Shown: positions 2,501 through 57,801 of the stretch, in pieces | Position numbering within the stretch: the first letter of the stretch is position 1 | Layout of the letters: each line of letters begins with the position of its first letter | Assembly: GCF_035594765.1 (NCBI RefSeq) | Contig: NC_085842.1 | Span: 180,371,036 to 180,435,035 of the forward strand | DNA length: 64,000 bases | DNA from: Anolis carolinensis | Taxonomy: Eukaryota | Direction of reading: 5' to 3' | Made by a program: the position numbers and the translations under genes | The notes under the pieces: generated by a model | Told to the model about the DNA's origin: nothing | Databases searched by the model: none | What the model saw: the letters and a program-made list of their open reading frames with translations, nothing else

Positions 2501-2820
2501 CTGTAAAGGTTAATGGAGACAGACAGGAACACATTTAAAACCCTTCCCTTTTCTGCCCCACAGCTCTAGTTTATATACAAGACCTACATTGAAGGAGACC
2601 CAGCATAGGTCTTGTATATGATCTGCACTAAGGTCAGCTATGTCTGCACAACTAAACAAAAATGCTATGATTATGCAGTACTTAGCTCTGTGTGGCAGGG
2701 ACAGGTCATCCTTAGAATGTCACAGCCATTAGTAATGTTCCCAGTTTGTTTCTATTTTTTGCTACACTCACTCATTTTAAAATACATTTCCCAGCGCAAG
2801 GAGTAGGACCAACCACTCAC

Positions 2821-2982
2821 ATTCAACGCGATATTTCTCCATCTCTTGTACTTCTGCAATGGATTCCCGCAGGTCACTGGTGAAGCGCAATCGATCCTGC
2901 AGACTGGGGGCATTGAAGATGATCAAGACTTTCCTTTCCCCACCAGGAACAGCTGAGAGCAGTTTAATCCCAAACTGGTAAT
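2821..2982 (-). CDS. IQSEC2: IQSEC2 exon 12 equivalent (162 nt), end of PH domain
   Basis: ccacgcag|AT TAC CAG...GTT GAA T|gtgagt; [53 protein letters not shown]. Confidence 0.97.
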
Positions 2983-3549
2983 CTGCGTGGAAGAGATTCA
3001 GAAACCAGCTGGGTGAAGATCCTCTAGCATCAAAAAGCAGGAAACCAGGGAATATCTATCCATCTTCCTGACTTTCTACATACACGGGGGCCAAGTTGGT
3101 GTACAACATTTTAAAAGTGCATTACAGTAAAGAACCCTCCTCATACAAAAAGTAAAGCACAATTAAAATTATGTTATAGAAAGACACAAGTTAAAGATAG
3201 CTGTAAAAACATGTCTGCAACAGTATTAAAAGATGCATAACACAAAACAAAATAAAATCATGATACTGTCCCTTGCAGTAAAACTCTGCTGCAAGAAGCT
3301 AAAACTCCAAAGCTTTCTTAAATAAAAATAGACCAGGATGTTGGCTTTTTCTCCAAAGGACAGTAACAGAGTGGTTCTGACTATATCCTGAGGGGTAGGA
3401 GATGGTGGATAGGCCATACGTGGGTTAAACTGGCCTGGCACAGGATACCAAGAGGGAGTGGACAGAAGGCCAAAAGAGCCTACTCTTTTTGGGGAGGGGG
3501 TGGAGGTTCAGTATGGAAGATGTCACTTTTTCAGGGCCCCATGGATTTA

Positions 3550-9402: not shown

Positions 9403-9612
<210 letters not shown>

Positions 9613-23827: not shown

Positions 23828-24094
<267 letters not shown>

Positions 24095-35390: not shown

Positions 35391-35789
35391 CTGCTTGGAG
35401 AAGGAGTCCTCAAGCTCTGTGATGTCATTGCAGAAGCCTCCAGAAGAGGAATGCAGGGAGCTGCCATCCAAGCCAGTCCGGCAGGAGCCACCATAGGGTA
35501 AGCCATGGTCCAAGAGATGCGGCCGAGACGTAGCCATGGTGCCTTCGTCCAGAGAAGCAGGTTTCCCTTCAAAGTAAGGGGCATTCTGGGCCTTGTCAAA
35601 CTCCTCAAAGGAGTACTGCATCCGCATGTTGGAAAGAATGATGCGTCGTGACATGCGGCTCTCAGATGCCGAGCTTCGCAGGCGTTCAAACTTCTTGTTC
35701 ATGCGATACTGGCGGAAGGCGGTCTGGATGGTGCGAGCCGCCCGTCGGCTCAGGAAATAGCCCCCATATTTCCGCTCCAGCATCTCCAC
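35391..35789 (-). CDS. IQSEC2: IQSEC2 exon 4 equivalent (399 nt), IQ motif
   Basis: attacag|GTG GAG ATG...AAG CAG|gtaggc; [49 protein letters not shown]...[13 protein letters not shown]. Confidence 0.97.
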
Positions 35790-37541: not shown

Positions 37542-37833
37542 CTTTTTGTCCTGCAGGTCCGTGGAGAGCTCATAGCTGTCTGACAGAGCCTTGGAACGCT
37601 TGCTCTCCTCCTCTTCCTGCTTCCTCAGCGCCACGCTGGCGGGCTGTAGCCGAGCACGTTGGGCCCACGGTAGCCCCGGGGATGGAGTATGACAGACAGA
37701 GGAAGAAGAGGAGGATGGCACCAAGTCGTAGTGCTCAACTTTGGTCACTTCCGGAGCACAGCGGTAAGGAGCCTGACTGCCCAGATTGTCCACTATAGTA
37801 CCAGTCTCACTTCCTGGTGGATCACCTTCCACA
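37542..37833 (-). CDS. IQSEC2: IQSEC2 exon 3 equivalent (292 nt)
   Basis: tctcttcag|T GTG GAA GGT...AAA AAG|gtaatg; [12 protein letters not shown]...[44 protein letters not shown]. The acceptor is phase 2. Confidence 0.96.
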
Positions 37834-38523
37834 CTGAAGAGAAAGAGGGGATGAGGTTAGATATACAGTAAATCCTCCAACACGACTCTAGAATCAACTT
37901 GTGACATAAGCTGACCACAGAGTTGCATGGAGGAGCTATACATTCATAGAGAAATGTACTCTCAAGTCAAAAACAGCCTTTTTATTTGTGGTTTTTCCAC
38001 TTGAAGAAGCCCTATGCTTCTAACCTCAGTGATTGTGGAAAGACCACTGCAATAGTTGAGGAGGAGCACTGACAAAAGATGAAGAAACTCATTTTAGTAA
38101 CCTGAACAAACTTTACTTCATCCTTCATCCCCTTCCTCTCACATCACAGGCTAGCCCATTTAGCTTTTACTGGTCTAAATCAGCATAATTAACACAATCC
38201 AGGATTGGATTTAATTTCTTTAAAGACAGCAGTATCCTTCAGAAGTATTTCAAGAGTGGCAGTACTGCTGATGGAGTGTATGTAGAATATATAGAATAAC
38301 TGTTCTCCACAAACATAAACTCCCAAATCGCTCCTCATCCTTCTGCGTAACCTGGCTGGAATGGTATTTAGATGTGGAAAACAACACAAAAGGTGGGATA
38401 AACATCCCACAGGGCCATTGATCCAATGAAGATCAGAGTTGATGCCTCTTAACCTTTTCGCCCCACCTCCAGCTTCTTTTTTAATGTTACTAGAGAAAAC
38501 TGCATATCTATATTGGCTTTGAG

Positions 38524-38809
38524 GGAGCCCCCGGTGACACAATGGGTTAAAACCCTTGTGCCGGCAGGACTGCTGACTTGAAGGTTGTATTGCTGACCTG
38601 AAGGTTGCCGGTTCGAATCCAATCTGGTGAGAACACGGATAAGCTCCCTCTGGCAACTCCAGCTCTATGCGGGGACATGAGAAGCCTCCCACAGGGTGGT
38701 AAAACATCAAACATCTGGGCGTCCCCTGGGCAACGTCCTTGCAGACGGCCAATTCTTTCACACCAGAAGCGACTTGCAGTTTCTCAAGTCACTAATGTCA
38801 CACACAAAA
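38524..38809 (+). mobile_element. tRNA-derived SINE (Anolis SINE2-like), full length
   Basis: ggagcccccggtgacacaatggg head; ggttcgaatcc B box; 12-bp TSD attggctttgag (38512-38523 / 38810-38821). Confidence 0.92.
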
Positions 38810-39239
38810 ATTGGCTTTGAGAGGCAGAAAATTTTCTTCCAGAAAATATTCCATAGTTTGAGTGGACATGCAATATAACTGAAAAAGCCACTTCTTTGAA
38901 TAGACAGGCAGGTTCCTCTGGAAATCAATGTGCAACCATTGGAACCTTTGACAAGAAAATATTGGGTGTATGAAAAAGCATATGGACACAGGACTTTTAC
39001 AGAGGTAGATAAAAAAGGAATATTGCTATCTGGATTATGGGCTTTTCCATTCTGCAACACAGTTCTAGTAAATTACTGGTCCATTTTGTTTTGGGATTTT
39101 ATTCAACCTAACAGTTGTTTTGCCTCTTGCAGCCAAGACTTGACCTAAATATAAGACCTTGGGGGCCTTCTATGTTTTTGATATAGCTTTCTTTCTATAT
39201 CTTGTATTTTCCCCACTTGGTGAGGTTAAATTTAGGCCT

Positions 39240-39600
39240 GGGTGTTGTTGACTGCTATGAAGTCAACTTCAACTTATGGAGGCATTATTAATGAAAAATA
39301 TCCAAGTTTCCCTATCATCAACAGCCTTGCTTGAGTCTTACAAATGTAGACAGTTGTGGTGTCCTTGATTTAGTCTATTCAGCTACAATCCCATCTTCTT
39401 TGTCTTTTCTGACAACCCTCTACTTTACCAAGAATTATTTTTTCTAATAAGCCATGTCTTCTCATAATATGGCTAGAGTATGACAGTCTCTGTTTAGTCA
39501 TCTTGGTTCAAAGGAAGAATTCAGGCTTGACTTGCTCCACGACACATTTATTTTGATTTTTTAAGCAGTCAAGAGTATTCACAGAACTCTTTTTTATGGA
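39240..39600 (-). mobile_element. Old RTE-clade LINE 3' fragment
   Basis: Degenerate ctactttaccaag...cttctcataatatggctagagtatgacagtctctgtttagtcatcttgg, resembling an antisense RTE ORF end. Confidence 0.55.
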
Positions 39601-42600
39601 TGTCATTTTCCAATATCCTTGCCATCTTATGAATTCAACACCTCCCTTTGTATGTTCCATCCTCTGTATCCACGCTCCCCATCTTGAACTCTCTATCTAC
39701 TTGTATACTTTTGTACAGTCATCGTACTAACCTGAGATAAAATTGTGTCACTTTACAAAAAGAATTCCAAAAAATGAGGGGGAGAAAAAACTAGTTTGGC
39801 AACCAGAAATGTAATGAGAGAGCATAGGTCAGCAGGAAACCTCCATAACAAAGATCACACCTCCATTTGAAATGTTATCAGTGGGATAGCACAAAAATAT
39901 AGTGGGAGGAACTGGTACAATGGATACGGACTTGTGACATTTACTCCAGCCTCTATTAGAAACTCGCCCAACAGGAAAAATAAACAAAGCGTACTTTGCA
40001 GTGAGCATAAAAAGTTGCAACTAGTACTTCAGGAGGAAAAAACCTGGGACACAAAGAAAAGTCACGTGGCTATATAGTATACACACCCTGCTAAGTACGC
40101 CTACAACTCATGTCAACTCCTGAGGCTGGAGGAGCCCCGATTTGAAAGGACTGGGGTGATTTGTTCACGGGATCATGGTCCACACCTTACATATAAGAAA
40201 ATCTTAGTTTTATGCAAAATGCTTCAACATTTGGGGAAACTTGGTCAGTGCTGCCTTTATCACGGTTTATGCAAAAGAATCAAGCTTTACCTAGAAATCC
40301 ATTGGCAGGCATCCTGTACCTGCTCATAGGTGGGGCAAACCAGAACAAAGTGAACTGAATTCTATTTGTGTAGGGCCCCTCACATACATGCATTAGCTAG
40401 AGGTGAAATTGAGAGGCAAGGCCAGAGCAAGTGTGGCACACTGACAGTGGGCAAGTACATCCTTCATGTCCTTGCCTGAGCATTTGCAGAGGACTCATCA
40501 TCTGTCTGTAATTTTAAGAGTATCTTGTTTGCAGGCTTAGGGAAAGTTTTTATTTCCCAATGGGAAGTCAAAGTACAAATATATTTGGCACTAATCTTTC
40601 TGTTGTTTTAGAAATGCTTTAGTTAATTGGATATTTTGTAATTACAGAGATAATAGACATACACATACGCACACAGGAGCAAGGACCAATCTAATGAAAT
40701 AGTCTCTAAGCCAACATGCATCAAAAACTTTTAATTAATGAAACCCCAAATTCCCTCAAGAAGCTGGGTGATAACACACACACCTCAATTTTAAGCAGGC
40801 TGATCTAATAAGATGTATAACTAGTTCATTTCCAAGATTGTTATATTGCTGATCCTCTGTTTCCATAGATTCCACATCAACGGATTCAACTATCCATAAC
40901 TTCAAATTATTTTTTCAAATTCAAAAAACCAAATTTTAATTCTGCCTTTTATATAAGGAAAGCCATTTTATTATGCCATTGTAACATCCATTAAGAACCC
41001 AGAGATTTTGCTATCCACTGAGATCCTGGAATCAAATCCCATTGGATACCAGGGGCCCACAACGTGTTAGTCACCAGAAGAACAATGGCTACTGTGGATT
41101 GTCAAGTGCATTGCCATTGCTGGTTTTTATACTCCAAGGCAATTAACAAAAGCAAGAAGTCGACTAAGTTCCTGCCAAGCTTCCATTCAAGGCTGATGGG
41201 TGTCAGAGTATGCAGGGATACTGACACAAGTACTCTTCTGTTGGTGTAGAGGTTCTCTCTCCTTAATGTGCAAAGGAACATCAATATGAGCTGAGAAACT
41301 GTTTTACTAGGCAGTTACAAGATGCAGTATTGGAAGCAGTCTATATCAGATAACAAGATTCTTATCAAAATACCTAAGGCTGGGATGTTTGTGCTCATGT
41401 AAATGTCACTGCTACCATGTCTGCATTTAAATTTGCCCTCACCTCATTGTCCAACTTCCGTCTCAAACCACACATACTGCATATAAGTTGAGGCTTCAGA
41501 ATATCACAGAATACCATGTATCTGAGGAAGTAACCGTGTGAGTCTCGGAAGTTGATACTGCAATAAATCTGTCACTTTTTATTGGTGTTACACAACTCTT
41601 GTTACAAAGGGAAAATAACAATTCATTCAATGATGAAAGCTGCAGCATGATGAAATTTCACTCTCTTAAAACTGGTGTCCCATATCATTTTAGCATAACA
41701 AATCAGTCTCCAAATATTCAGATCATCTAAAAATACTTCATGTGGGGCTGCAAGCAACTAAATACGTTTTAGCTCATTAGATGATTAGACTAAATGATGA
41801 ATGAGAACCAGTGTGACATAATAGTTTGAGTTCTGGCCTACAAATCCAGGTGACTAGTTTGAATCCCCACATGGCCATAGAAATACCACTGGCTAATCTT
41901 GGGCAAGTCACACTCTCTCCGCCTCAGAAGAAAGCAATGGCAAACCCTTCCTGACGAAATCATGCCAAGAAAACCCAATGCTAGATTTGCTTTAAGGCGC
42001 AAATATGTCCAAGTGACAACAACTGATTGTCAATTAATCTACTAATACAATTTAGCTAACTTTGCATAAAGTTACACCGGTAGTTTTGAAGCTGCAATTG
42101 TAGGTTCTTTTTTAAACAACGCATCATGGTGTCAAACCAAGTATAAGCTAGGAGTAGGCAAAATGTGGTTTTGGCCATATGTTTTCTCTCAAGGCTCTTG
42201 CCTTTCCAGGCTCCTTGCATCACTCTTCTGACTTCCAAAAGAATCTATTGCTGCTCCTGGAAGTCTTCAGGAAGAAAATTCATCATATAGGTGATTAAAA
42301 ATAATCCAAAAGTACTTCTTTCAAGTTTGTTTTGGATGCCAGAAGAATGCGTTTTTGGACAAAAAGGGGGAAATGGATCTGTAGACTTAGGAGCCTAACA
42401 CAACATAGAATTTGATTTGTGGAAAATACAATCATCTGATAAAGAAAGCTATATCCAGCCCAGCTTCCTCTTTAGCAAAGGTGAATGCCAAAATATTTTG
42501 CTAAGACTGAGTATATTTTTCAATCTTGTTTATTAATCACTCCTATATATATACATATGACCCAGTTAATTGGGGACACTTTTCCAAAAATTCTAGTGGT

Positions 42601-43091
42601 TTTGATTCGTTCATTGATAAATAATTAAACAGTACAGCCTTGTAGTATTAGGAAACTAAAACACTTTCAAGGAATAAGCCACAATTTTCAGGACTTATTT
42701 AGGTTCTACAACAAGAAATCTCAAATTGTTGTACCACTGAAATCTAGAGAAGTGACACATTCCAAGGACAAAAGAGAGGTCAGTTTTCAAACAGGGTTTT
42801 ATATATCTTAGTAGATAAACTAGGAAGAGGAAGTAACAATGATCTGAGAAGAGTGTTAGGGAACATTAACTCTATGACAGAAAAGGCCCTGAGGGCAATG
42901 TCTCCCTACATAATACTAGGAGGTGGAACAGAGTTTCACCAAATAATTTTATATGCTAGGACAGCTAGGCGATATAGCATGGGAGCTAGCATGGTATAAA
43001 TCAGAGGTGTCACATCATTTTCATGGAGGGCCACATCAGTTTTCAAGGGTTGTTGAATCTACGGATGGAAAATCTGTAGACAAAGGTGGCT

Positions 43092-43094
<3 letters not shown>

Positions 43095-43130
<36 letters not shown>
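43095..43130. repeat. (TG)18 microsatellite
   Basis: Read directly from the sequence. Confidence 0.97.
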
Positions 43131-43134
<4 letters not shown>

Positions 43135-44725
43135 GTGGTTGGTGCACTTTCATTTTTGCCAATTTGGGCCCCAGATGTTATTGAATGACAACTCCCATCA
43201 TCTTTTATTATCCGCCATAAGGATTAGGGATAATGGGAATTGCAACACAACAGCTGTTGTGGCTCTGAGGTTGGGGAAAGCTTAAAGGATATTTTAAAGT
43301 CAGATATCATTTCCACAAGCCTTGTATCTAAATTCAAATCGCACTCTCCTGCCTCAACAGAACAAACAGTAGCCTTCCAGGTGTTACTGTACAACAACTC
43401 CCATCACCTCTACTCATGATGTACAATAGTGAGGAATGCAGGAGTTATATTCCAGCATCTAAAATGACATGGCAGGCTAGATTCGGGGCCTTGAATTTTA
43501 AACATGTGGTATAAATGGTTAGAACACTGGACCAGGACTGCAGGCAACCAAGGTTCAAATCACTCCTCAGTCATTGGGTGATTTTGAGCAAGTCACACAC
43601 TCTTTCAGTCTTAAAGGAAGGCTTAGCAAAATTCCTTTGAATATAGTCACTGTAAATCAGTTATCTTGAAGGTCTGCAACAGAAAAATGTTATGGTAGTG
43701 GTAGTGGTGAACGGCTGGGGGGGAGGAGATGTGTTTGACATAATCAGCAACAGAGACAAATTAAGCTTTAAGAATCAGTACTAGGAACTGGGCCCTGAAA
43801 GGAAGAAATAGCCAGCATCGATGCTTCAAAACAGGAGCTACATGGGTGAACTAGTCTGCATTTAGGAGAAAACAATAAACTGTCTCCTGCAATAACCAAA
43901 CTTCCTTCAAATCTCACCCCAGTGAGGACTTTTGACTCCCTTTTGATGGTTTCTGAGCATCTGGTTATATGTCAAGGCCAGGATAGCAAGCAGTGTTGGC
44001 TTCATCTTGGAACAACATGGACTCTAGCTCCTGGTCAAGCTCATCCAGAGAAAGAAAACAACTCTCAGTCTAGCCTACCTCACAAGTTTCTTTTTAAGAC
44101 AATGTGGGTGGTGGGAGAGGTTTGAGGAAATGTGCCCTGAGCTCCCTATAGGCAGGATGGAATAAATAATAATAAGGGCATATAATGCAATTACATTAAG
44201 ACAATTACCAAGGAAGCATGGACAAGAAACAATTAGATCAGTACAACTAATTAAAGAATGTGATTGCCACAGGAACTACTTCTCTGGTGGTAGTCCCTAC
44301 TCAGAAAAGCTGTACTTAATATTGATGCCACCAACTTTTGCCCCTCTTCTGGATATGTGGGGAAAAAGCCATGAGTCACATAGTTCCCAGGTTGAAAAAT
44401 AGAGAAAACCAAGAGAGTTAGGAAACCAACTTTTTTCTCTTTGGTAGAGCCAGCGTGGTATAATGGTTTGAACACTGAATTATGACTTGAAATCCCCACT
44501 TGGCCATGGAAACCTACTGGGTAATCTTGCGTGAGTCACACACTCTCAGCTCCAGAAAACACAATTTTATGTTTAGTTTAGGGTCACAACGAGTTGAAGG
44601 TACATGACAACAACAGAGCAAGGGATTGTGGCACAGGAATGGATGGTCTCACTTTTCCTAATGAATATACTAGAGAAATGTAATGATCCCAGAAGTTCTA
44701 CACAGAGGGTAAGAAGAGTCAAGAA

Positions 44726-44845
44726 CAGTGGTTCTTAACCTGTGGGTCCCCAGATGTTTTGGCCTTCAACTCAGTGGTAAACCCGCTGAGATTTCTGGGA
44801 GTTGTAGGCCAAAACATCTGGGGACCCATAGGTCGAGAACTACTG
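44726..44845. mobile_element. hAT MITE, family A (internal deletion)
   Basis: cagtggttcttaacc...gagaactactg; TSD gtcaagaa / gtttagaa. Confidence 0.85.
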
Positions 44846-47814
44846 GTTTAGAATCTAGATAGAAAGAGTTAAGTTATTGCAGGTGTGATAAAGGAATGTT
44901 AATTGCAGGAGAAAGGACAATAAATATGAACATCTAGTCCAGCAGCCAAATATGAGAACAAAAGGCGTATCTCATTCTTGCATTGAGAAGTATTTTTAGC
45001 CAGAGATGAAACCAGGGCCAGCTGGTACACAAAGTATCTACTCAACCACTGGGCTAGAGCCCTTTCTCCCAGAAGGCTTGGGCAGCCTTTGTTTAGTGAT
45101 CATACCCCTGTTTAAAGAACATTTTCCTTAAATCCTTTCTATTTGGACTCTTCTTACTCTCTGTACAGGACCTATGGCATCATCATTTTTTAGAAAGCCT
45201 CCTCCTCTCAGTCCCTTAAGTAGTATTTTGTTTTAAGGAAGGTAAGACTGGAAGTCACTTTGTGGGACCTGTCTTCAATGCTTACCAAATGATTCACAGA
45301 GTTGTGGGAGGAAGTGGCTGGCAAGATAGCATTAAGGACGACACCACTTCTTTGGACTGGCCCAAGCTGATGTAACTCAGCCATTCTGACAACACAATCT
45401 AGCCAACTGAAGAGTAGAGAACAGAACTTTCTGCACTGCAAGCTTTCAGGTTCCTCCTTAAGCCACTAATTTGGAGAAAACACAAAACAGGTCTGCATTT
45501 CTGAACAGGATTCACAGTGTGAAGCCTGTAATGCCAGGTTTCTATGGCAGCAATAACAGCCAGGACTGGCCTCAAACATTTTGTTACCTGAAATGAAGCA
45601 GCACTGGAGCACTAGCATGGACAGGGCTAAACCGCAACATTTTGTTGCCTGACACAGAGCACTCACCCTAGTTAAACTGCAAAGTACTCAAAGCCAAGCA
45701 AGCTATTATGGTATGTGAGGCAGTAAAACAACCTATTTTGAATGACTGACTTACTGCCCCTTTCATGACACCCCAAATCTACTGCTTAAGGTGACACAAT
45801 CTGCAGTAGTGCCATCCCTTGATGTTGGGTTTAATTGGCTGATGGGATGTTAACAGATTATCACTGCAGATAAGATTATCAACTGGCAGTTAAGAAGCAC
45901 AAGGTAAGATTTGCATTGATAATACACAGCTCTAGGTAAGCTGTCCCCTGGATTCAGGCTGAAGACCTTAGCTAAGAGCCTATCCAATCTGTGCAACCAA
46001 ACTAGACAAGAATAAATGTGCCTTGGTGACTACACTGACAGAACCATACATAATCCACTTTCATCATGATGCAAGCAGAAGGGTGCATTTCAGGGACCAA
46101 TGCTCAAGGACGACCCATCAAGACAGATGGAGAGATTGCCACTGGGTATCTCTTTTCTTCCTTCTTCACACACAGAATATTAGTGAAGGATCACTTTACT
46201 ATAAGAAGGAAAAACAGAAAAAGATGCAGGACACGGGAAGGACGGACGACACACCACACCAAGCATACAGCAATATTACTGTCAAAACCTGTCTTAAGTA
46301 GGCGAAGAGCTGTTAGTAAGCTCACAAGCACGAAATTGGGTGTGACAATAATGAATGTGTACTGCACGCAATATCATGAAAAGCTTTCCTGAACATGCAA
46401 CAGACTGTAAGTGAGGGTAGTGGGTAGGAAAATTCACTGTAAGGTAAAGGACAATGAGGATGTGATACACTGCTGAAAAGCAAAGGTGTGATTAACAGAA
46501 CAAGGAAAGAATGAACAATGGTGGTAAAAGATAATTGGGCATACACATATATTTCAATAAGCATGCTGGACACATTTTTCCCCAAAGCACAATTTTTTTG
46601 TTTTGCAACATGCATACCTTTAAAACAAAGGAGACACACCCAAGCCTTGATAAATCCAAGAGAAGCAATCCAAATATTATCCCCCCCCCCCCAAAAAAAA
46701 ATGCACAGGGAGCATTCAGTAAGGAAAAACAAAGGAACACACACCATGGAGAACATAAACCATACCACTGTAGAAACCAGGGGCAAAGTACAACACGCTG
46801 TGAACCATCAGAGCCTTCTGTCTGACACCACACCGACGCTCAGACACCGCTCAGCTTGAAGGATTCTGCCGAGGAGTCAAACAAAAAGCAGCAGAGGCTA
46901 CTTCAAATCTTTCCCTCCTTGTTAAGCCTTCTTTCATCAGCTGAATCAGCAGCCTTGAATTCAAGGATTCCAGGCTGCTGCAAGTTCAAATCCCAGCAGG
47001 ACCAATTTATGCCTTTTCTTGATCACGGTTGTAGAAAGGAAGACATTTTGGTGTCACCTGCAGTTGGAACCAGCATGCCCTGCCTCAACACACCTTCACC
47101 TCTAATCACCTAGACTTGTTTAAGCTGCGTTCCTTTCCATCAGGTTTCTGGGCAAAATCCCAGCTTAAGGGATTTCCACTCTCTAGTCCTTTAAATACCC
47201 TTCATTCTCTCGCATCCTCCTCCACCCAGCAAGGTTTCATCCAGAAAACAAAATGTTCCTTTTATTTCCTCTCTTCAAATGTTATGAGAATGAGAGACAG
47301 CAGCTGGTGTAGTCCACCCCAGCGGCGGCTGCATTTTGTAGAGTTAAAGAAGTTCCATATGGTACCATTCCAAACATGAGACGTTCACTCAGAACAGAGA
47401 TGTAATGCTTCAGGTCATGTGTCAGGTTGGGTTCTTTGTTGGAGATGGTGTATGCATGTGTGTGTACTAGTGTATTTACCCTTTGGGATTACACCTGCTA
47501 GGAGGAGGAGAACATTATAGATAATCCTATAAACCAGTGCTTTCCAATCTTTGGTTCTCCAGCTGTTTGGGACTTCAACTTCCAGAAGTCCCAGCCAACT
47601 GTCAAGTATTCCAGGTGATTCTGAATAGCAGACCTTGGATAGATAACATTTTTGAAATATAATGCCCAGAAATTACTATTTATATTTGGCACAAAGTGCA
47701 TGCAATTAGGTGATGGGTAATTTAATAGACCGGTGGGCAGGCTACGTGTTTGCTACTGCAATGATGATGATGATGATGATGTTGATGTTGTTAATGATGA
47801 TAATACAATCACAG

Positions 47815-48640
47815 ACCACCAGGGTAATCCAGTCTAACCTTCTTCTACCATGCAGAATCAAGCACTACCAACAATTGACAATCCAGCCTCTGTTTCAAAA
47901 CCACATTTTGAGGAAACATATTCCTGTCAGAATGTTTTCCCTCAAAGTTTAGGTGAATTCTCTTTTTCTGTAGTTTAAATCCATTGTTCCATGTCTTAAT
48001 GTCTGAAGCATCAGAAAACAAGCTGACTGCCTTCTTAATATGGTAAAAAGGTAAAGGTTTCCCCTGACGTTAAGTCCAGTCGTGACCGACTCTGGGGGTT
48101 GGTGCTCATCTCCATTTCTAAGCCGAAGAGCCAGCATTGTCCATAGACACCTCCAAGGTCATGTGGCCAGCATGACTGCATGGAGCATTGTTACCTTCCT
48201 GCTGGAGCGGTACTTATGTTTTCAAATAACTAGGTTGGCAGGAGCTGGGGCTAACAGCGGGTGCTCATTCCACTCCCGGGATTTGAACCTGGGACCTTTT
48301 GGTCTGCAAGTTCAGCAGCTCAGCGCTTTAACACACTGTGCCCCCAATACTTTCAAATACTGAAATATGGCTATCTTGTCCGCACTTCCTTTAAGTTAAA
48401 CATACCTAGTTCCCTAAGTTACTCCTCATAGGACTTGGCTTTGACCATTTTGGTCACCCTTCTCTAGACATGTTGCAGCTTGTCGATATCCTTCTTGAAT
48501 TGTAGCATCCAAAACGGGCAGAGTGTTCTATAGCTGAGGTCTGACCAAAGCAGTATAGAGCAGGATAATGACTTTCTTCAGCCTAGACATTATGTTCCTA
48601 TTGGTGTAGCCTAGGATTGCACTGACTTTTTAAGCTGCCA
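47815..48640 (-). mobile_element. CR1 LINE 3' fragment interrupted by a Sauria SINE
   Basis: Antisense CR1 ORF2-end motifs on both sides of the SINE (tttctgtagtttaaatccattg; ctgaggtctgaccaaagcagtatagag). Confidence 0.75.
48042..48346 (-). mobile_element. Sauria SINE, near full length
   Basis: (aaaggt)n = ACCTTT tail; aggtcatgtggccagcatgactgcatgg core; tRNA-like head at the right end. Confidence 0.93.
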
Positions 48641-50244
48641 TCATTTTTATGGTGACAACAAAAGAAGAGGAAGACAGACATGGGGAAAAGGAAAATGATA
48701 TACTCCTTCACTACTACAAATTAGAACACAAATGTATTTATCATGTCAGAAGCAAGTTGAGAATATAGTTATAATGTATAAAAATATGATATTATTTCTA
48801 GTGCCCACTTTTTGCATGGTAGTCAAGCAGCGCTTCTTGTAAGTCAGAGCACAGTCCAGAGTGACTTCCAGGTATTTTGGTGTGCTGCAATGTTCCATTG
48901 GGATTCCTTCCCAGGTAATCCTCAGAGCTTGAGATGCTTATCTGTTCTTAAGATGAAAGGACACATCTGTGTTTTAAATGGATTAGGAATCAGCTGGTTT
49001 CTCCTGTAATAGGCAGTAAGAGCACCTAAAGCTTCGAAGAGCTTCTGTTCAACCATTTTAAAATTCCCTGCTTGAGCAGTGATGGCACGATCACCATCAT
49101 AGATGTCTCTTTATTATAAAAACTGTTTGGTAGTGGAACAAGGAGTGGACTTTCCTTCTTTTAGAGGTCTTTAAACAGAGGCTGCATGGGAATGTCTCAG
49201 GAGTGTTTTGGTTGTGTGTTCTTGCATGGTGGTAATGAGTTGGACTAGACCCTCGTGGTTCTTTCCACCTCTACAATTCACTACTATAAGAGAAGAAATA
49301 ACCTTGGCGTTGTTGTTGGATGTCTTAGCAAACACATGCAGAGACAATATCCAAGATATAAGAAACCACACTCAAGCAGACACACTTCACACCAACTTCA
49401 CCATCACTACAGATGCATTTTGATACATCTGGTAGAGAGACAGATATATATCACATTTTCCCAGCAGGAAGAGTACTGTGGTTTACGGGATACGGAAATA
49501 TGATTTTACTGCCACAGAAGCCTAGCCAATAGATATCTGGATTTCATGGAGTAACTGTGCAATTAACAAACTCAAAAGCATCCGCAGGGAAAAGCTCTTG
49601 CTCTCCAGGAGACAGAAATGATGGAAACAAAGTGGTTGCCTGACAAAGACATAAAGATGACCTTCTGTTTCCTACTGTGAAAGGAAAAACAACTGTTGAA
49701 AAGAAGGGGGGGAGAGGGGGGGGAGACAGAGAGAGAGAGCGAGAAGACACAATAGTGCTGCTGATACTAATCTATGTCAACACAACTCTTCCCTGACCCT
49801 AGCATGTATATATGTCAATACAATATAATGTGTGAGGAAGAAGGCTTTTCTTAGCATACATATTTTTCTGCTTTCCAGATTCTATTTGAACAGAGGATTG
49901 CATCTACAAAAATGTGTTTAGTCCATTGGTTTAAAATTGGTAAGCTACATAAAAGATGCTGAGAGACTGCAGCTGCATGATAAGGAACAAGAAAGACTGA
50001 TAAATATTTGGAAGAGATAACAAGGCAATGTTGTTTATTAGGTTGTTAATTGCTTACAAAGGTGTGCTTAATTGTGTAGGCAGCTTTAATGTAACTATTT
50101 GTCTTATCAGAATGCTTATGAAAATAGCAGATGGCAAGGCAATCATTTTAAAAGAAACATTTTCTTTTCCTTATTATACAGGGGGAATTGTCTGTTCTAT
50201 TCTACAAGTTATGAGGACACACAAACCTGATAGATAGGTACATA

Positions 50245-50546
50245 GACAGACAGCATAGGGAAGGGTTAGAACCCCTGTGGTGTTTGTTTTGCTGTCTATG
50301 CCCATTCAAAAGATTTCACCTCACTTTCTGTCCCTGTGACAATCGTATTTTGACAAATGTGGCTTGTCGTGGAAACAAGGATTAGTGATAAAGCTTCAGT
50401 GAAGACACCTTTTCCCAATGATGATGACTCTTCCAGGAGTGAATTTCCCTTCCGGGGGGCAGATTTCTCTCACTTCCTGTGATCTGACCCCGTTCTTAAT
50501 TATGAATCATTTGTACATCTGGTGTTGTAATTTGGGGACTGCCTGT
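50245..50546. mobile_element. Tc1/mariner-like fragment (one end)
   Basis: Ends in ...gtaatttggggactgcctg|ta. Confidence 0.55.
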
Positions 50547-50607
50547 ATGTATATGCCTTCATGTCATTTATCAACTTATTGTAAACTAAATGGGGGGGGG
50601 GGGGGGG

Positions 50608-50751
50608 TTAGGCAAGAGATACTCAGAAGTGGTTTTGCCAGTTCCGTTTTCTCAAACAGAGCCTACAGCACCTGGTATTCCATGGCAGTTTCCCATTCAA
50701 GCACCAACCAGGATTTATCCTGGTTAGCTGCCAAGATCAGATAGGGATCTG
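50608..50751 (-). mobile_element. 5S rRNA-derived SINE
   Basis: Minus strand cagatccctatctgatcttggcagctaaccagg...tgggaaactgccatggaataccaggtgctgtaggct (5S-like), then ggaactggcaaaaccac tail shared with the 58830 copy. Confidence 0.8.
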
Positions 50752-52450
50752 AAGCCTATCTATTCCAGCTATAAGGAAAATATCACCAAACAACAGCTAT
50801 CTGCTAGGTATACAGTAGGATGCAATCTATATGCAGACTGATCAAACAGTACAAACTATGCTAGATTCACACATTTACAGATGTTTTCTCTGTATGAAGC
50901 AACCTGATGAATGTTTTTGGTTGACAGCATATCCATACAAGTATGCATACACAGACACGCGCACACGCACATACAAACAGGTACACTTATACACCAAACA
51001 TTCATTCATAGGCATATATATTTACCCACAGGATTCCAACATAATCACTCGGCTCAAGGACTGAAATAAGGATAAGACTGGTAGGGGAAGTCTCTGAAAT
51101 TGGCATTTTGCATGATCAATCTCAAATATTTCATGCAGATAAGTATGACACTGTATATGACCTCCAGGCCACACATAACACTTCCTGGCTTTTTCTGTTG
51201 TGTAATTAAAGAAGAGCATCATAATAGCATACATATTTGTTATTACTGTGTCATTTGTTTTCAAGTGTGAGTGAGCAGTTGTGTTTCTCCGGCACTTGGG
51301 GCAAATCTAGCTACAAGGCACATTCTTCCCTTGGCTTCCTGCAAGAACTTCTAATGTCTCAAAACAAGCAGTCCCCAAGTCCAAGATCACTTTGCCTAGT
51401 AAGCGCAAGGGATACTCAGATTCAACTTCACTGTCATGGAGCTCAAGTTGGTTTCCCAAAACAGACATCTCATCTCATCCTGCTTCACAGAATGATTATC
51501 TCCCCTACAGCTCCACAGAAGAGCAGAGTAAACTAAAGTAGTTATTTATTCATTACTAATAGTATTTTTTACAACAGATACTCAGTGTGTTCTTTTCTAA
51601 TGAATATTACCTAGTCACCAACAGGTTTGACATGTCATTATTCTCCTTGTTTTGCCAAAGCTTCAAAAATGTAATCTAATGAATGCCAGCTGAGAAGTCC
51701 CACCCTTTTTAATGAATTTTACTCTCAGGTAGGTTGTCTATCACTCTTCAAAACCCAGGCACCTCAGTCTGGTTAGGATTGAGAGGGTAGCCTTACTAGA
51801 CTTTTCAGCTCAGCTTAGTTTTTTGAGATCCTCCTACTCTTGAAACCAGTGTCAGCTTCAAGATGACATATTTGGAAGACTCCATATAGAGGTCTCCCTC
51901 TCAGAAGAAACGGGTGTCAGCAATTCAACAGTTATTTCCACGCTGGAAACATCCTGTCTTGGGAATGGCAGCATGTGGCTTTCATGTCAGTAGAGCGTTG
52001 AATACACTCAAAGTTTTGATTTAAACTTTAAGGTAAAGTTATTGAAAGTGCTGAACCCTATCCCCAAATTAGGTTCTGTGTCTTGGTTGGTTTATTTAAA
52101 GTTTAGTTTAAAACTGTAGTTAACACAACGTTTACAAAGACATGAGTGCAACTAGTTACTACAAGTTGGGGGCTATCAAGTGTGCAAGCAGATCTAGCAA
52201 AAGATCTACACCTACAGAATCACCAAATACTCCCTTTCAGCATTAGGATGGTGCTATAAATCATTATATGATCAATATCTGACTCGTCAATTGATAAATC
52301 CATTTTGTGCAAAAAGAAGAGTGGAGAAGAAATTTAAAAACATATTTAAGAATGATTTATTTTAGCATCAATTCTGCATTTCAATCAAGATACACAGTAT
52401 GAACAACTTAACCAGTGACAAAGTAATGGGGCTGGGATTAGAGTATAAAG

Positions 52451-52585
52451 CAGGCATGGACAAACTTTGCCCTCCCAAGTGTTTTGGACTTCAACCCCCA
52501 CAATTCCTAACAGCCGGAAAGGTGGATGGGATTTCTGGGAGTTGAAGTCCAAAACACCTGGAGGGCCAAAGTTTGTCCATGCCTG
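52451..52585. mobile_element. hAT MITE, family B
   Basis: TIRs caggcatggacaaacttt / aaagtttgtccatgcctg; perfect 8-bp TSD gtataaag. Related copies near 6486 (partial) and 58170-58300. Confidence 0.92.
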
Positions 52586-53220
52586 GTATAAAGGGAGACA
52601 GAGAACTTGGTAAGATTATATATAGATCTATCAAGCAGCTGGCCTGTTAGGCTAGAAGTGTCAAAGCAATGTTTAGTTGGAAGACAGTTCCTCTTTTTAT
52701 TATATGTTTGTAACTGTGATGATATATGCACAGTGCTAGGGAACTATTGTCCCTGTTCGTACCACTGCTAACAGATTGAATCCTAAACACTCAAACACAG
52801 ACTCTAGTTTTTGGCCATCTTTTCTGCATTAACTATCAAAATGGGATCGAAATGGGATCATGTTGGGTAATATACACTCAAGTAAAGAGAAATATCAGAA
52901 TTATGTTTAAAAAATAAACGTCCCAGGCACCATACACAGAGCACTGATGCCTCGTGCATCATGGAAAACTTTATTCAACCAGTCCTCTGACTTCAGAGAT
53001 TTCAGAAGGCATTACCAAAACACTTAAACCATACACTCATAAACAACAGGACTACAAGATTGCTCGGCCTCCTGTTTTTCACAAGAGCTAGGATCCTTAG
53101 GAAGCCACACCCAACACCACATTCTGCTTATTCCCCCATCAGTTCTGCTTAATCTCAGCATGCTTTAACATCAGACTCATACATGAATGACTACAGACTT
53201 CTTCATTTTGTCAATGAAAT

Positions 53221-53358
53221 AGAGAAGTTTCTCAAACTGTGCTCGTCCAGGTGTTTTGGACTTCCGCTCCCAAAAATCTCAGCCAGTTTACCAGCTGTTA
53301 GGAACTGTGGAAGCTGAAGTCCAAAACATCTGGAGGAGCACAATTTGAGAAATTCTGT
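53221..53358. mobile_element. hAT-like MITE, related palindromic family
   Basis: agaagtttctcaaactgtgctc...gagcacaatttgagaaattct; core shared with families A and B. Confidence 0.75.
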
Positions 53359-54679
53359 AGTAGAGGGTCCCCAATGCACTAAACACGTGAGAACTCTATG
53401 CAATGGTAATCCTGGTCATGCAGAAAGGCAGTTTATCTTCTGCTGCAAAGGTTAGGATTTACTTGCAGTCATCTCAATACACGGCCAGGAACTAGCAGAT
53501 TATTGTCTCCCTATTTTAGGAGGAGATAACTCATAACCTATTGTCTACAAGTAAAATTCCCATACCTTTCAATTGAACTTTCTAGGTTTCTTTTTAAAAT
53601 CTGTTGTTGTATGCCTTCAGGTTGTTTCTGACAGAGTTTTTCAGGGCTTAATGTACATGACTTCTCCAGGGCTACCCAGTAGGTTTCCATGGCTGAGTAA
53701 AGATTCAAATCCTAGTCTCCAGAGTCGGAGTCCAACACTCAAACCACAATGTCATGCTGGCTCTCACTCCCATGATACTTAAGATTTTAAAACATGGTTT
53801 TGCCTCAAAACTTAAACCAAAAAAAAAAATCCTTTTTAAAATGTCAATGTGCACAGAGCAGGTTTGTTTTTAGGGAGAACTGCACTTCATGGAGATTTCT
53901 GGGAACACAGAGTTCTTAAAATCAAGATTAACCTACCCATCCTGGGTCGGGTTTATATCTTTGCTTTTTTCAAATTCAGTAACAGGATGTTGCCCCTCCA
54001 TCTTTTATAGATTTGCAGTCATCTCATTATGGAAAGTTGATATTAAAAACGGTTGCCCCTGTCATTTGACAGTGGGCCATTTGTATCCACTCTGCAAAAA
54101 GAGACTGTTAGTAACTGAGACTGAAGCAGTTTCAGATTACTTGATTCAAGGCAAAAGATTGTGATCTTATGTATGTACTAACAGAGCTGCAGAAGAAAGG
54201 AGATGAATTGGGAGGATAAAGAGACCTATTTAAAAGGCTGTTATGGCACTGCGGTACTTTAGGATTTCCAATCTCCATTCAGATCCTTTTCTCAGATCCT
54301 TTTCTCCCTTATATGACCCAGAGTGACATAGTAGTTTGAACACTGAGCCAAAAGAGTGGGGTTCAAATCCTGCCTCAGCCATGGAAACCCACTGGGTGAC
54401 TTTGGGCAAGTGCCACTCTCTCTGCCTCAGAGGAAGACACAGGCAAAAGATCCCTTTGAACAATTCAGCTGTTATGGAAGAGGTGCAAATAGAGGGCTAA
54501 AGGGAGAAACACACCAAGAGGAAGGCACGTCAAGCTAACCCTTGTTGGATCATCTTCCATCTGGAAATTGATGTCCTCATTGTGATAGACCACGCGGATC
54601 CAGAATAGGTCTCTACAGTCACTTATGGACCCACTGTCAAGACTCTACGAGGGATCACCAATGATGATTATTATGATGA

Positions 54680-54915
54680 ACCAGAGTGGCATAGTAGTTT
54701 GAACACTGAGCCAGAACACTGGACTGGAAACCAGGGTTCAAATCCCTGCACAGTCATGAAAACCCACTGGGTAACTTTGGCAAGTTCAACTCTCTCTGCC
54801 TCCGAGGAAGGCACAAACAAAAGACCCTGCTGAACAATCCTTGCCAAGAAAAACCCATTAAATATTATCCGTAGAATGCCATACATTGGGAATGACTTGA
54901 AGGCAAACAAAAACA
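54680..54915 (+). mobile_element. Old tRNA/CORE-like SINE; one of more than 10 degenerate copies in the window
   Basis: gggttcaaatccc...aacccactgggtaactttggcaagt...ctctctgcctc...cttgccaagaaaaccc. Similar copies near 7400, 9100, 26745, 28400, 41810, 43520, 44450, 53600, 54320, 55400, 60230 and 62860. Confidence 0.7.
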
Positions 54916-55105
54916 ATCCACTGAGGATGACCTTATCCAGGTACAATGTCTTTCTGAACTGTCTCATAAATTCTGAAATTCAAGATAGGGGAAAATATGC
55001 TCACATAATGAAGACTGTAGGAAAAGGAAACAGGTCTAAATAATTTGCTAGAGATGAAGTTGTAGCAGTTGAAGTTCTTCACATGGGTCCCAATAGTCTC
55101 TAGTA

Positions 55106-55240
55106 CAGTGGTTCTCAACCCGTGGGTCCCCAAGTGTTTTGTCCTACAACTCCCAGAAATCTCAGCCAGTTTACCAGCTGTTAGGATTTCTGGGAGTTGA
55201 AGGCCAAAACATCTAGGGACCTACAGGTTGAGAACCACTG
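55106..55240. mobile_element. hAT MITE, family A
   Basis: cagtggttctcaacc...ggttgagaaccactg; TSD ctctagta / ctctaata. Confidence 0.9.
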
Positions 55241-56801
55241 CTCTAATAGAAGCTGAATGGAAGCCTCTGAGAAAAGGTTGCCTGTGACAAAATGGCCTGT
55301 GTGGATCTCAGAAAGGACTCTCTGCATTTCCTATTGGCTCCCTTTAGTCCTGGTAGTGAAAGAGTTGTTGTTGCTGTTTTTGTGGCTTCACATCCACTTT
55401 AATTACAATGACTTAATCCTAGAGTGTGGTTTTTAACAAGATATTGTCAGAGGGTTTTGCTACTGCCTTCCTTTAAGGCTGAGAGAGTGTGACTTGTTCA
55501 AGCTCGCCCAGTGGGTTTCTATGTCCAAGCCAAGATTCAAACCCTGCTCTTCTAGAGTCCTAGTCCAATACTGAAAATGTAGATGTGGGGAAGGCTGGAT
55601 ATAAAGAAAGTTAACAGTAATTATGATAATAACAATAATAATAGCCAGCACATAACCACCTCAACACATCATTGCCTCAATTTCTCCAGATCGGATCAAC
55701 CAGGCTACAGCTCCTACCTCCTCACCTGCAACATCAGTGTCCATGCTGGCTTGGGATGATGGATGGTGTAATCCAGCACATCTCAGGGTGTGGGCTAGTA
55801 TACCCAAGCATTGGGGGGGGGGGTCAATTTAGAAAGTTTGAACTGGCCTCCGAAATTTGACAATGAAGTGATAATGAAGCTTGTGATGATTAAGTGAGAA
55901 TGAAGCTTGCTCAAGTCAACTGAGATTTTGAATGAAAAAGGGGTATTTGGAGTACTTGGGTAGGGGGTTCCCCAGTGAACACACCAGAACATATCTAGCA
56001 GAGAAACCAGGGTTTCCTGGCAAGGTCTCTGTTGAATGAAAGAGATCCCATGAGGGGCAGATGGATAAACATGTCTGAAGTCACGAACACAGGCCAGTAA
56101 GTGACCATCTGTACAGAAGAGAGATGTCAATTTAGTGGCGTGTCTTCTGAGAAATCCGGAAATATGGGAAGACAGCCTGCAAATTGGATTTGGCTCTCAT
56201 ATATGGAGGGAAGGGCAAGTCTCTGTGCGAAGGGATCCACTCAAACAAATGGTGCAAGGAGCAGCGGATATTCTCTTCCGGCTTGTGCCTGGGGTGGCTG
56301 CATTCAGCAGCAGCATCTTTCAGAGCATCTTGGGTACAAGCAAAAGCATTTTGCAGGGGGGGGGGCATTAAGAGATAAATGAATGGTAGAAGTACAGAGT
56401 GGTTGAGGCAGAAAAGCAATCCTGATGAAGACAAATTATTTGGGGGACATTTCTGAACAAACACAAGAGATGAAGGATTTCCCTCTTGGTGTGTGGAAGC
56501 ATTTCTAATAGGAGATCCTTGGTTTGGGATGCAGTTGCTATTGGGGGGGGGGGGGGGATTATATGGGAGGGGGAAGCTGCCTAAGAGATAACGAGGGAAA
56601 GGAAACAGAGGAGGAAAAGAGCTCCTGCTGTGTTGCCACTGAGAGGTGATTCCCTCCTGAGTGGGAATATTTCTGGTGGGGGGGGGGGGCACAGGGAGAA
56701 AGACTATGCAAAGTACTTGAAATAAAAGAGATCCCTCTTGGCGGGGGAGGGCAAAAGGGTGGAATCTCCAGGGAGGAATGAGTAAAAAGGGGCTCACTCA
56801 C

Positions 56802-56866
56802 CAGTGCAGGAGTTTATGCTGCAGCTGCCCCGGGCGGCGCTCAGACGAGCATTGCAAGCACCACAT
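56802..56866 (-). CDS. IQSEC2: Candidate alternative first coding exon of IQSEC2 (MWCLQCSSERRPGQLQHKLLH-C)
   Basis: acagccATG start context; consensus donor TG|gtgagt in phase 2, matching the exon at 37833; CpG-rich surroundings; similar to the IQSEC1 N-terminus MWCLHCNSER (recalled). Confidence 0.85.
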
Positions 56867-57200
56867 GGCTGTGGTTGTGCTCCCTCCAAGCCAGGATCCC
56901 GGCGTCCTCCTCCTCTGTTTCCTCAGCAAGGGATTGGGGGGGGGGGGGAGGTGGGGACCCCGGATGACTCTCAGTGGAGGAGGAGGTGGTGACAAGCCCC
57001 AAAGATGCCCAGGCGCCAGCGCGGCGTCTCCATCCCTCCTCCTTCGTCCTCGCAAAGGGGAGGAGGAGAAGGAGGAGGCAAAGACTTCTCAGCCCTCCCT
57101 CTGGAGAGCCCTGCATCCCTCTCCTCTCCCAAGTCCATCAAGGCCCCTGGCAGCCCCTAAAAAGAAGACCCACCCCCTGCTCCTGCCCCAAGCATCAGGG
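56810..57200 (-). promoter_or_regulatory. Small GC/CpG-rich region, likely internal promoter/5'UTR for the MWCL exon
   Basis: Local CpG clusters (cgggcggcgc, gcgccagcgcggcg) and long G runs in an otherwise AT-rich, CpG-poor intron, directly 5' of an ATG-bearing exon. Confidence 0.55.
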
Positions 57201-57493: not shown

Positions 57494-57801
57494 CTGGTGG
57501 CACAGTGTGTTAAAGCGCTGAGCTGCTGAACTTGCAGACCGAAAGGTCCCAGGTTCAAATCTCAGGAGCGGAATGAGCGCTCGCTGTTAGACCCAGCTCC
57601 TGCCAACCTAGCAGTTTGAAAACATGCCAATGTGAGTAGATCAATAGGTACCGCTCTGGCAGGAAGGTAACGGCACTCCATGCAGTCATGCTGGCCACAT
57701 GACCTTGGAAGTGTCTAAGGACAACACCGGCTCTTCGGTGCAACAACCCCCAGAGTCGGTCACGACTGGACTTAACGTCAGGGGAAAACCGTTACGTTTA
57801 C
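57494..57801 (+). mobile_element. Sauria SINE inserted into an older repeat
   Basis: Reverse complement of 48042-48346; tggtggcacagtgtgttaaagcg head, ggttcaaatc B box, degenerate ACCTTT tail. Confidence 0.92.

Follow-up and report, generated by a model that had tools for sequence, protein, structure and literature searches.

A probable alternative 5' coding exon of squamate IQSEC2 with a counterpart in IQSEC1

Positions 56802-56866 on the minus strand of the window, by which we mean the whole stretch of 64,000 nucleotides of Anolis carolinensis contig NC_085842.1 analysed here, very probably (at roughly 0.85) constitute a genuine alternative 5' coding exon of squamate IQSEC2 (BRAG1). The exon and the elements through which it connects to the body of the gene are as follows:

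56802..56866, minus strand: alternative 5' exon, coding part; ATG, 20 codons and 2 bases, 65 bases in all
56796..56801, minus strand: 5' splice site GTGAGT, consensus, phase 2, directly after the terminal TG at 56802
37834..56801, minus strand: 18,968-base intron separating the alternative exon from exon 3
37542..37833, minus strand: exon 3, 1 + 97 codons, the common N-terminal extension starting VEGD

The 21 codons at 56866-56804 (minus strand) encode MWCLQCSSERRPGQLQHKLLH, which comprises an M-W-C-L-Q-C head and then a basic tail. The ATG, at 56866-56864 (minus strand), stands in the context gccATG; upstream of it the frame is open to a stop at 57091-57089 and holds no further in-frame ATG. 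The acceptor AG of exon 3 is found at 37835-37834, and on the donor side of this exon gtaatg follows 37542 (minus strand). The phases of the two exons agree, with the codon split across 56802->37833 being TG plus T, i.e., a cysteine at residue 22. Thus, the ATG, the codons, the gtgagt donor and the phase matching exon 3 that the first-pass annotation had described are all correct on the sequence. The joined product of the alternative exon and exon 3 was read by eye from both exons, and the searches of the window gene were run with single exons or whole database proteins. A tblastn comparison of 13 MWC-type N-termini from other species with the 64-kb window matched only the alternative exon, with E-values ranging from 3.5e-13 (gecko, 21/21 identical) to 6.6e-4 (a fish IQSEC1); the best E-value in the rest of the window was 0.15 or worse.

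The claimed identity of the gene as IQSEC2 is borne out by the conservation of exon 4, the collinear match of a gecko isoform, the Pfam domains and a phylogenetic tree. The exons relevant to this assignment are:

35391..35789, minus strand: exon 4, which spans 133 codons and holds the IQ-motif region; 94% identity with Pogona IQSEC2
23828..23995, minus strand: Sec7-domain exon (PF01369, E = 2.6e-13)
9424..9594, minus strand: Sec7-domain exon (PF01369, E = 1.7e-15)
2816..3001, minus strand: IQ_SEC7_PH-domain exon (PF16453, E = 2.7e-18)

The IQ-region, Sec7 and IQ_SEC7_PH exons thus occur in order and all on the minus strand, with the Sec7 and PH exons downstream of exon 4. The domains were recognised in single-exon translations, and the Pogona vitticeps IQSEC2 match comes from a search with exon 4 alone against 1.84 billion representative proteins. 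In tblastn searches of the window, the gecko IQSEC2 isoform X3 matched at 88.9% over 875 aa (1343 bits), a snake IQSEC1 at 66.9% over 590 aa (792 bits) and a fish IQSEC3 at 53.4% over 498 aa (520 bits). The gecko match is collinear from residue 1, with residues 1-21 falling on 56866-56804, and the window gene lies at about equal distance (87-89%) from all the sampled squamates. A maximum-likelihood tree of 40 proteins recovered an IQSEC2 and an IQSEC1 clade with 100% SH-aLRT each; MWC-start proteins are present in both, and all the sampled MWC-start IQSEC2-type proteins of the lineages listed below are lodged within the single IQSEC2 clade. The tree was computed from 970 columns, the 22 N-terminal ones probably among them; since these could only draw the MWC rows together, the split into two clades is not owed to them.

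Several entries named IQSEC1 or IQSEC1-like by NCBI are placed inside the IQSEC2 clade, namely alligator KYO19261.1, catshark XP_038637948.1 and further ones from catfish, salmon, surfperch and frog. In the bird and lemming loci a gene with JmjN, ARID and PHD domains (KDM5-like) directly follows IQSEC2; the window ends inside IQSEC2. One turtle model (Pangshura, P0198) is an IQSEC2 fused to the KDM5-like gene. The IQSEC2 of Lemmus lemmus (locus L002) is unusually compact (40 kb) and divergent in sequence, and the bird IQSEC2 locus L003 is that of Zonotrichia. Of the large exon 5 of the window, gecko X3 aligns with the distal part alone (31022-30723 vs 31694 onward, minus strand), which suggests that an alternative splice occurs inside this exon.

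The exon is conserved at IQSEC2 in other vertebrates, with the MWC start found from shark to birds. In the IQSEC2 clade an M-W-C-[L/I]-x-C start running into the VEG[D/E] exon is already annotated in the gecko, two turtles and Alligator mississippiensis, and also in five bird proteins, two newts, a frog, a catshark, the bowfin and many teleosts, the lineages sampled being those of representative proteins and their cluster members. The closest counterpart is isoform X3 of the gecko Heteronotia binoei (XP_060107885.1, P0194), whose first 21 residues are those of the window exon and whose residue 22 is a cysteine. It has the same junction onto the VEGD exon, lacks the coiled coil and is collinear with the window over its remainder; however, it belongs to another species, differs over that remainder to the extent given above and is a computational gene model, as are all the equivalent predicted isoforms of turtles, birds, newts, bowfin and teleosts. 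Across 17 proteins of the IQSEC2 clade, M1, W2, C3 and C6 are present in every one, L15 in 16 and C22 in 14; the conservation of the exon peptide is centred on residues 1-11, L15 and C22. At the nucleotide level, blastn aligns the window exon with the bird IQSEC2 exon at 76% over 71 bases (E = 2e-10), and the similarity is limited to the region from the ATG through the donor, the flanks not aligning. Between these two exons 13 codons differ, 6 of them synonymously, which points to constraint on the peptide and not on the RNA alone.

Comparison with IQSEC1 supports an origin of the exon deeper than either paralog. Within the IQSEC1 clade, the MWC head occurs in proteins from a snake, a swallow and several fishes, and most of the MWC peptides of this clade have 22 residues with a terminal cysteine before VEG[D/E]. 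Exactly 65 coding bases followed by GTGAG are found at four loci, namely the window, bird IQSEC2 (L003), bird IQSEC1 (L005) and bowfin IQSEC2 (L006), and in each of them the MWC exon is followed at a distance of 3 to 19 kb by the VEG/VDG exon. A lamprey isoform (P0372) has WCLYC preceded by four extra residues and an IQSEC1-like tail; no MWC-type start was seen in the sampled hemichordate and crinoid isoforms. As the exon occurs in IQSEC2, in IQSEC1 and in the lamprey protein, it should be older than the IQSEC1/IQSEC2 split. These sequence comparisons support the proposal that it is homologous to the MWCL-type first coding exon of IQSEC1 and was present in the vertebrate ancestor before the two genes separated; the same-length, same-phase IQSEC1 exon and the lamprey protein thereby uphold the earlier suggestion that it predates the duplication. 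The conservation of the MWC exon spans an estimated ~500 million years.

We take the MWCL-type IQSEC1 isoform to be BRAG2b, i.e., IQSEC1 variant 2. The first-pass annotation had put forward a human IQSEC1 start of this kind, and the same head, length and junction are found in bird and snake IQSEC1, the sequences in which this was checked. The IQSEC1 exon resembles the window exon in its M-W-C-L-[H/Q]-C head, its 65 coding bases, its phase-2 GTGAG donor and its junction onto VEG[D/E], and the isoform it begins is likewise devoid of the long N-terminal region. It differs in belonging to a paralogous gene from a separate, fully supported clade and in having an acidic, helix-prone tail (TQSLLELELDSC). 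With the tail after the head being basic in IQSEC2 and acidic in IQSEC1, a shared function is possible for the head only. A second recurrent alternative N-terminus, with a K-x-x-C-x-D-Y-W-x-x-L-C pattern of about 25 residues ahead of the VEG/VD exon, was seen in proteins of lampreys (P0380, P0381), hagfish (P0398) and Scleropages IQSEC1 (P0159); the IQSEC family thus probably has a further alternative first exon of ancient origin.

Mammalian IQSEC2 presents a different picture, as had been claimed: none of the sampled placental and monotreme IQSEC2 isoforms has an MWC start. The sampled mammalian proteins begin instead with the coiled-coil exon, with a MEPP/HQYCC exon pair or with short model-specific peptides. 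The downstream promoter P1 of human IQSEC2 yields a 949-residue product with an arginine at position 6 (PMC6752297, PMC9409358), which is thus not an MWCLxC start. Searches with tblastn and blastn detected no counterpart of the exon in the IQSEC2 loci of the Chinese hamster (L001, with gaps), the Norway lemming (L002, gapless) and the aye-aye (L004, gapless), the best matches there, at 20-21 bits, being at the level of wrong-strand noise. Since the same queries find the exon from teleosts to squamates at E = 1e-5, an intact mammalian exon should be visible. Three weak candidates were rejected: a hamster stretch (L001:25212-25238, YCLQCTSRR, 20 bits) is AT-rich, has no ATG and runs into a stop four codons on; an aye-aye stretch (L004:55670-55720, 20 bits) finishes with KLLH before a stop, has neither ATG nor GT donor and is blank in blastn; and a polar-bear Ensembl start of 13 residues (P0358), superficially like the exon in shortened form, is matched neither in hamster nor in lemming. 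An MWCL string at L001:12652 seems to belong to a rodent SINE. Going by the three non-human loci and the sample of isoforms, mammalian IQSEC2 seems to have lost the exon.

The mammalian P1 isoforms (NM_015075, NM_001243197) are comparable in being coiled-coil-less IQ-Sec7-PH proteins made from a promoter that lies downstream of the coiled-coil exons and upstream of exon 3 (PMC6752297, PMC9409358), whereas their N-terminus is an unrelated sequence from two exons, MEPP... followed by HQYCC (e.g., hamster P0214 and goat P0346). This exon pair would supply the coiled-coil-less isoform of mammalian IQSEC2 instead of the MWC exon. The HQYCC exon is found in the platypus (P0354, P0355) as well as in these two placentals, and it is also a cassette in long squamate IQSEC2 isoforms (P0204, P0212, P0224, P0245). 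It is absent from positions 37834-64000 of the window, the 26 kb upstream of exon 3; being present in squamates, it is thus a separate exon further upstream and not the mammalian version of the MWC exon. The echidna IQSEC2 gene has a length of 131 kb.

Transcripts that use the alternative exon would splice from 56802 to 37833, and the upstream coiled-coil exons would be skipped by this alternative start, giving an ArfGEF isoform that retains the IQ, Sec7 and PH modules and is predicted to begin with a 22-residue peptide headed by M-W-C-[L/I]-x-C. By replacing the exons that encode the coiled coil, the exon would yield an IQ-Sec7-PH ArfGEF without a self-association module; an isoform lacking the N-terminal coiled coil, as previously proposed, is what gecko X3, the bird isoforms and others represent. 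As to the head itself, W2, C3, L/I4 and C6 are invariant or conservatively replaced in the 17 IQSEC2-clade and 6 IQSEC1 proteins. N-terminal dual-cysteine S-acylation signals are known in synaptic scaffolds such as PSD-95. The MWC head is similar to these in having two cysteines within the first six residues and hydrophobic flanks, whereas its spacing is CxxC and not CxC, so that we are dealing with a resemblance only. By this analogy there is roughly one chance in three that the Trp2-Cys3-[Leu/Ile]4-x-Cys6 head is an N-terminal membrane-targeting signal acting by dual S-acylation, which would localise the isoform in place of self-assembly through the coiled coil. Our literature search returned no report of acylation of the MWC N-terminus; rodent Iqsec2 figures in palmitoylome papers, and the one acyl site of Iqsec1 in the papers searched is Cys960, with the MWC N-terminus not listed (PMC10996552; bioRxiv 10.1101/408468, 10.64898/2026.05.15.725211). 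Invasion of PC3 cells did not depend on the unique N-terminus of IQSEC1 variant 2 (there BRAG2b), and swapping this N-terminus shifted localisation; these constructs carried GFP at the N-terminus, so that an N-terminal signal would be masked in them (PMC7955138).

It is also possible, if on the unlikely side, that the head works without lipidation, be it through recognition of the Met-Trp N-terminus as an acetylation or degradation signal, through a redox or metal function of the CxxC motif together with Cys22, or through a nucleotide constraint at the start codon, i.e., translational control. The focus of conservation on residues 1-11, L15 and C22 fits such a reading, as does the literature result on acylation, and the retention of Cys22 in most lineages is left unexplained by simple dual palmitoylation. 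Against its metal-binding variant, the ligands expected of a C2H2-like site fail, as His17 and His21 are not conserved: a zinc knuckle of the form C-x2-C ... H-x3-H was rejected because His17 is replaced by Arg, Ser or Gln in turtles, alligator and birds, residue 21 is Tyr in teleosts, and both histidines of the window peptide are also replaced in IQSEC1. Against the nucleotide variant stands the synonymous fraction, 6/13, of the codon differences between window and bird. Returning to dual S-acylation, we consider it rather unlikely that its fuller version holds, in which the head would be an acyl anchor that brings a coiled-coil-less ArfGEF to membranes, predates the IQSEC1/IQSEC2 split, was lost from mammalian IQSEC2 and is kept in mammals in IQSEC1 only. 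If it were true, patients would lack an isoform class that is present in non-mammalian models of IQSEC2 disease, the gene being X-linked in humans.

Potential transcript evidence comes from sequencing runs, all of which were compared as assembled contigs; none of them is on record as RNA, and the RNA nature of run X13 is a guess. Record 9 of X13, a 155-base contig, covers 56802-56932, and its match ends exactly at the 56802 donor; its 24 further letters match nowhere in the 1.6-kb stretch compared. One repeat aside, 56802-56932 is all that X13 covers. A spliced transcript would look like this, with a putative acceptor side, and a direct splice onto the VEGD exon is consistent with the phase and with the homologous gene models that make the same join. 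Runs X1, X2 and X4 cover the intron too and therefore represent DNA or unspliced RNA. Two further elements upstream of the ATG emerge from these contigs and the adjoining sequence:

56867..56932, minus strand: 5' untranslated sequence of at least 66 bases, continuous with the exon (X13 record 9)
56915..56917, minus strand: candidate 3' splice site, a cag that follows a C-rich tract; it is in frame with the ATG, 48 bases ahead of it

If the candidate acceptor at 56915-56917 is used, some transcripts may contain the exon as an internal one. In that case the promoter would lie further upstream and one or more noncoding 5' exons would be joined at 56917-56915, with the protein unchanged. We regard this as doubtful. 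A single contig, record 27 of X4, matches 56827-56915 and then continues with 19 unmatched letters, thereby diverging exactly at the C-rich tract and cag, and the CpG enrichment around the exon is weak (observed/expected 0.3-0.6), with GC peaking at 0.64. However, the divergence is that of one short contig, the X13 contig runs on past 56915 to 56932, and in both bird and bowfin the gene model starts at the ATG, an argument of little weight where UTRs are not modelled. A short upstream ORF of about 20 codons in another frame is present at about 57033-56973 (minus strand), and it would be inside the 5' leader if transcription begins further upstream.

It is unlikely that the peptide is functionless in itself and that the exon serves only as promoter and start codon for the coiled-coil-less isoform. 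This would accord with the swappable N-terminus of IQSEC1 variant 2, with which invasion was kept (PMC7955138), and with mammalian IQSEC2, which appears to manage without the MWC exon. The constructs of that study were, however, GFP-tagged at the N-terminus, and across two paralogs the head keeps its M, W, C and C without exception and the peptide its length of 22 residues; given this invariant head and fixed length, a mere start codon is insufficient as an explanation. That the match is a chance ORF or a decayed pseudo-exon, or that the gene is really IQSEC1, is highly improbable, as nothing beyond the shortness of the exon favours these readings, and they are refuted by the tblastn E-values set against the window background, the intact donor with fitting phase at which the RNA-like contig ends, the protein comparison, the 65-base layout shared by four loci, and, for the gene, the clade placement and exon-by-exon identity that give IQSEC2.

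In terms of its status, the MWC-start IQSEC2 isoform is already known from public gene models and is an ordinary alternative start. On the question of novelty, the isoform is annotated in many RefSeq and Ensembl models, and our literature search found no study characterising it and no paper on an N-terminal exon shared among IQSEC genes; the string MWCL in full texts pointed mostly to the lymphoma cell line MWCL-1 and to OCR noise from old scans, and never to IQSEC. In this genome the window exon should be entered among the alternative 5' coding exons of IQSEC2, as in related species. The occurrence of the same 65-base exon in IQSEC2, IQSEC1 and a lamprey gene places it among the oldest parts of the isoform repertoire of the family. 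There is a modest evolutionary point in an ancient exon that is shared by paralogs and was not detected in mammalian IQSEC2. It is of relevance for fish, frog and bird models of IQSEC2-related disorders and for what the conserved di-cysteine head may do in IQSEC1, whose isoform with this head is well studied.

A tRNA-derived SINE, which we take to be of the squamate 'Sauria' type, occupies 57497-57700 on the plus strand of the window. ARAGORN detected no intact tRNA in it; over its first 65 bases the summed contig depth reaches millions in all four runs, and thousands of contigs end in the SINE.
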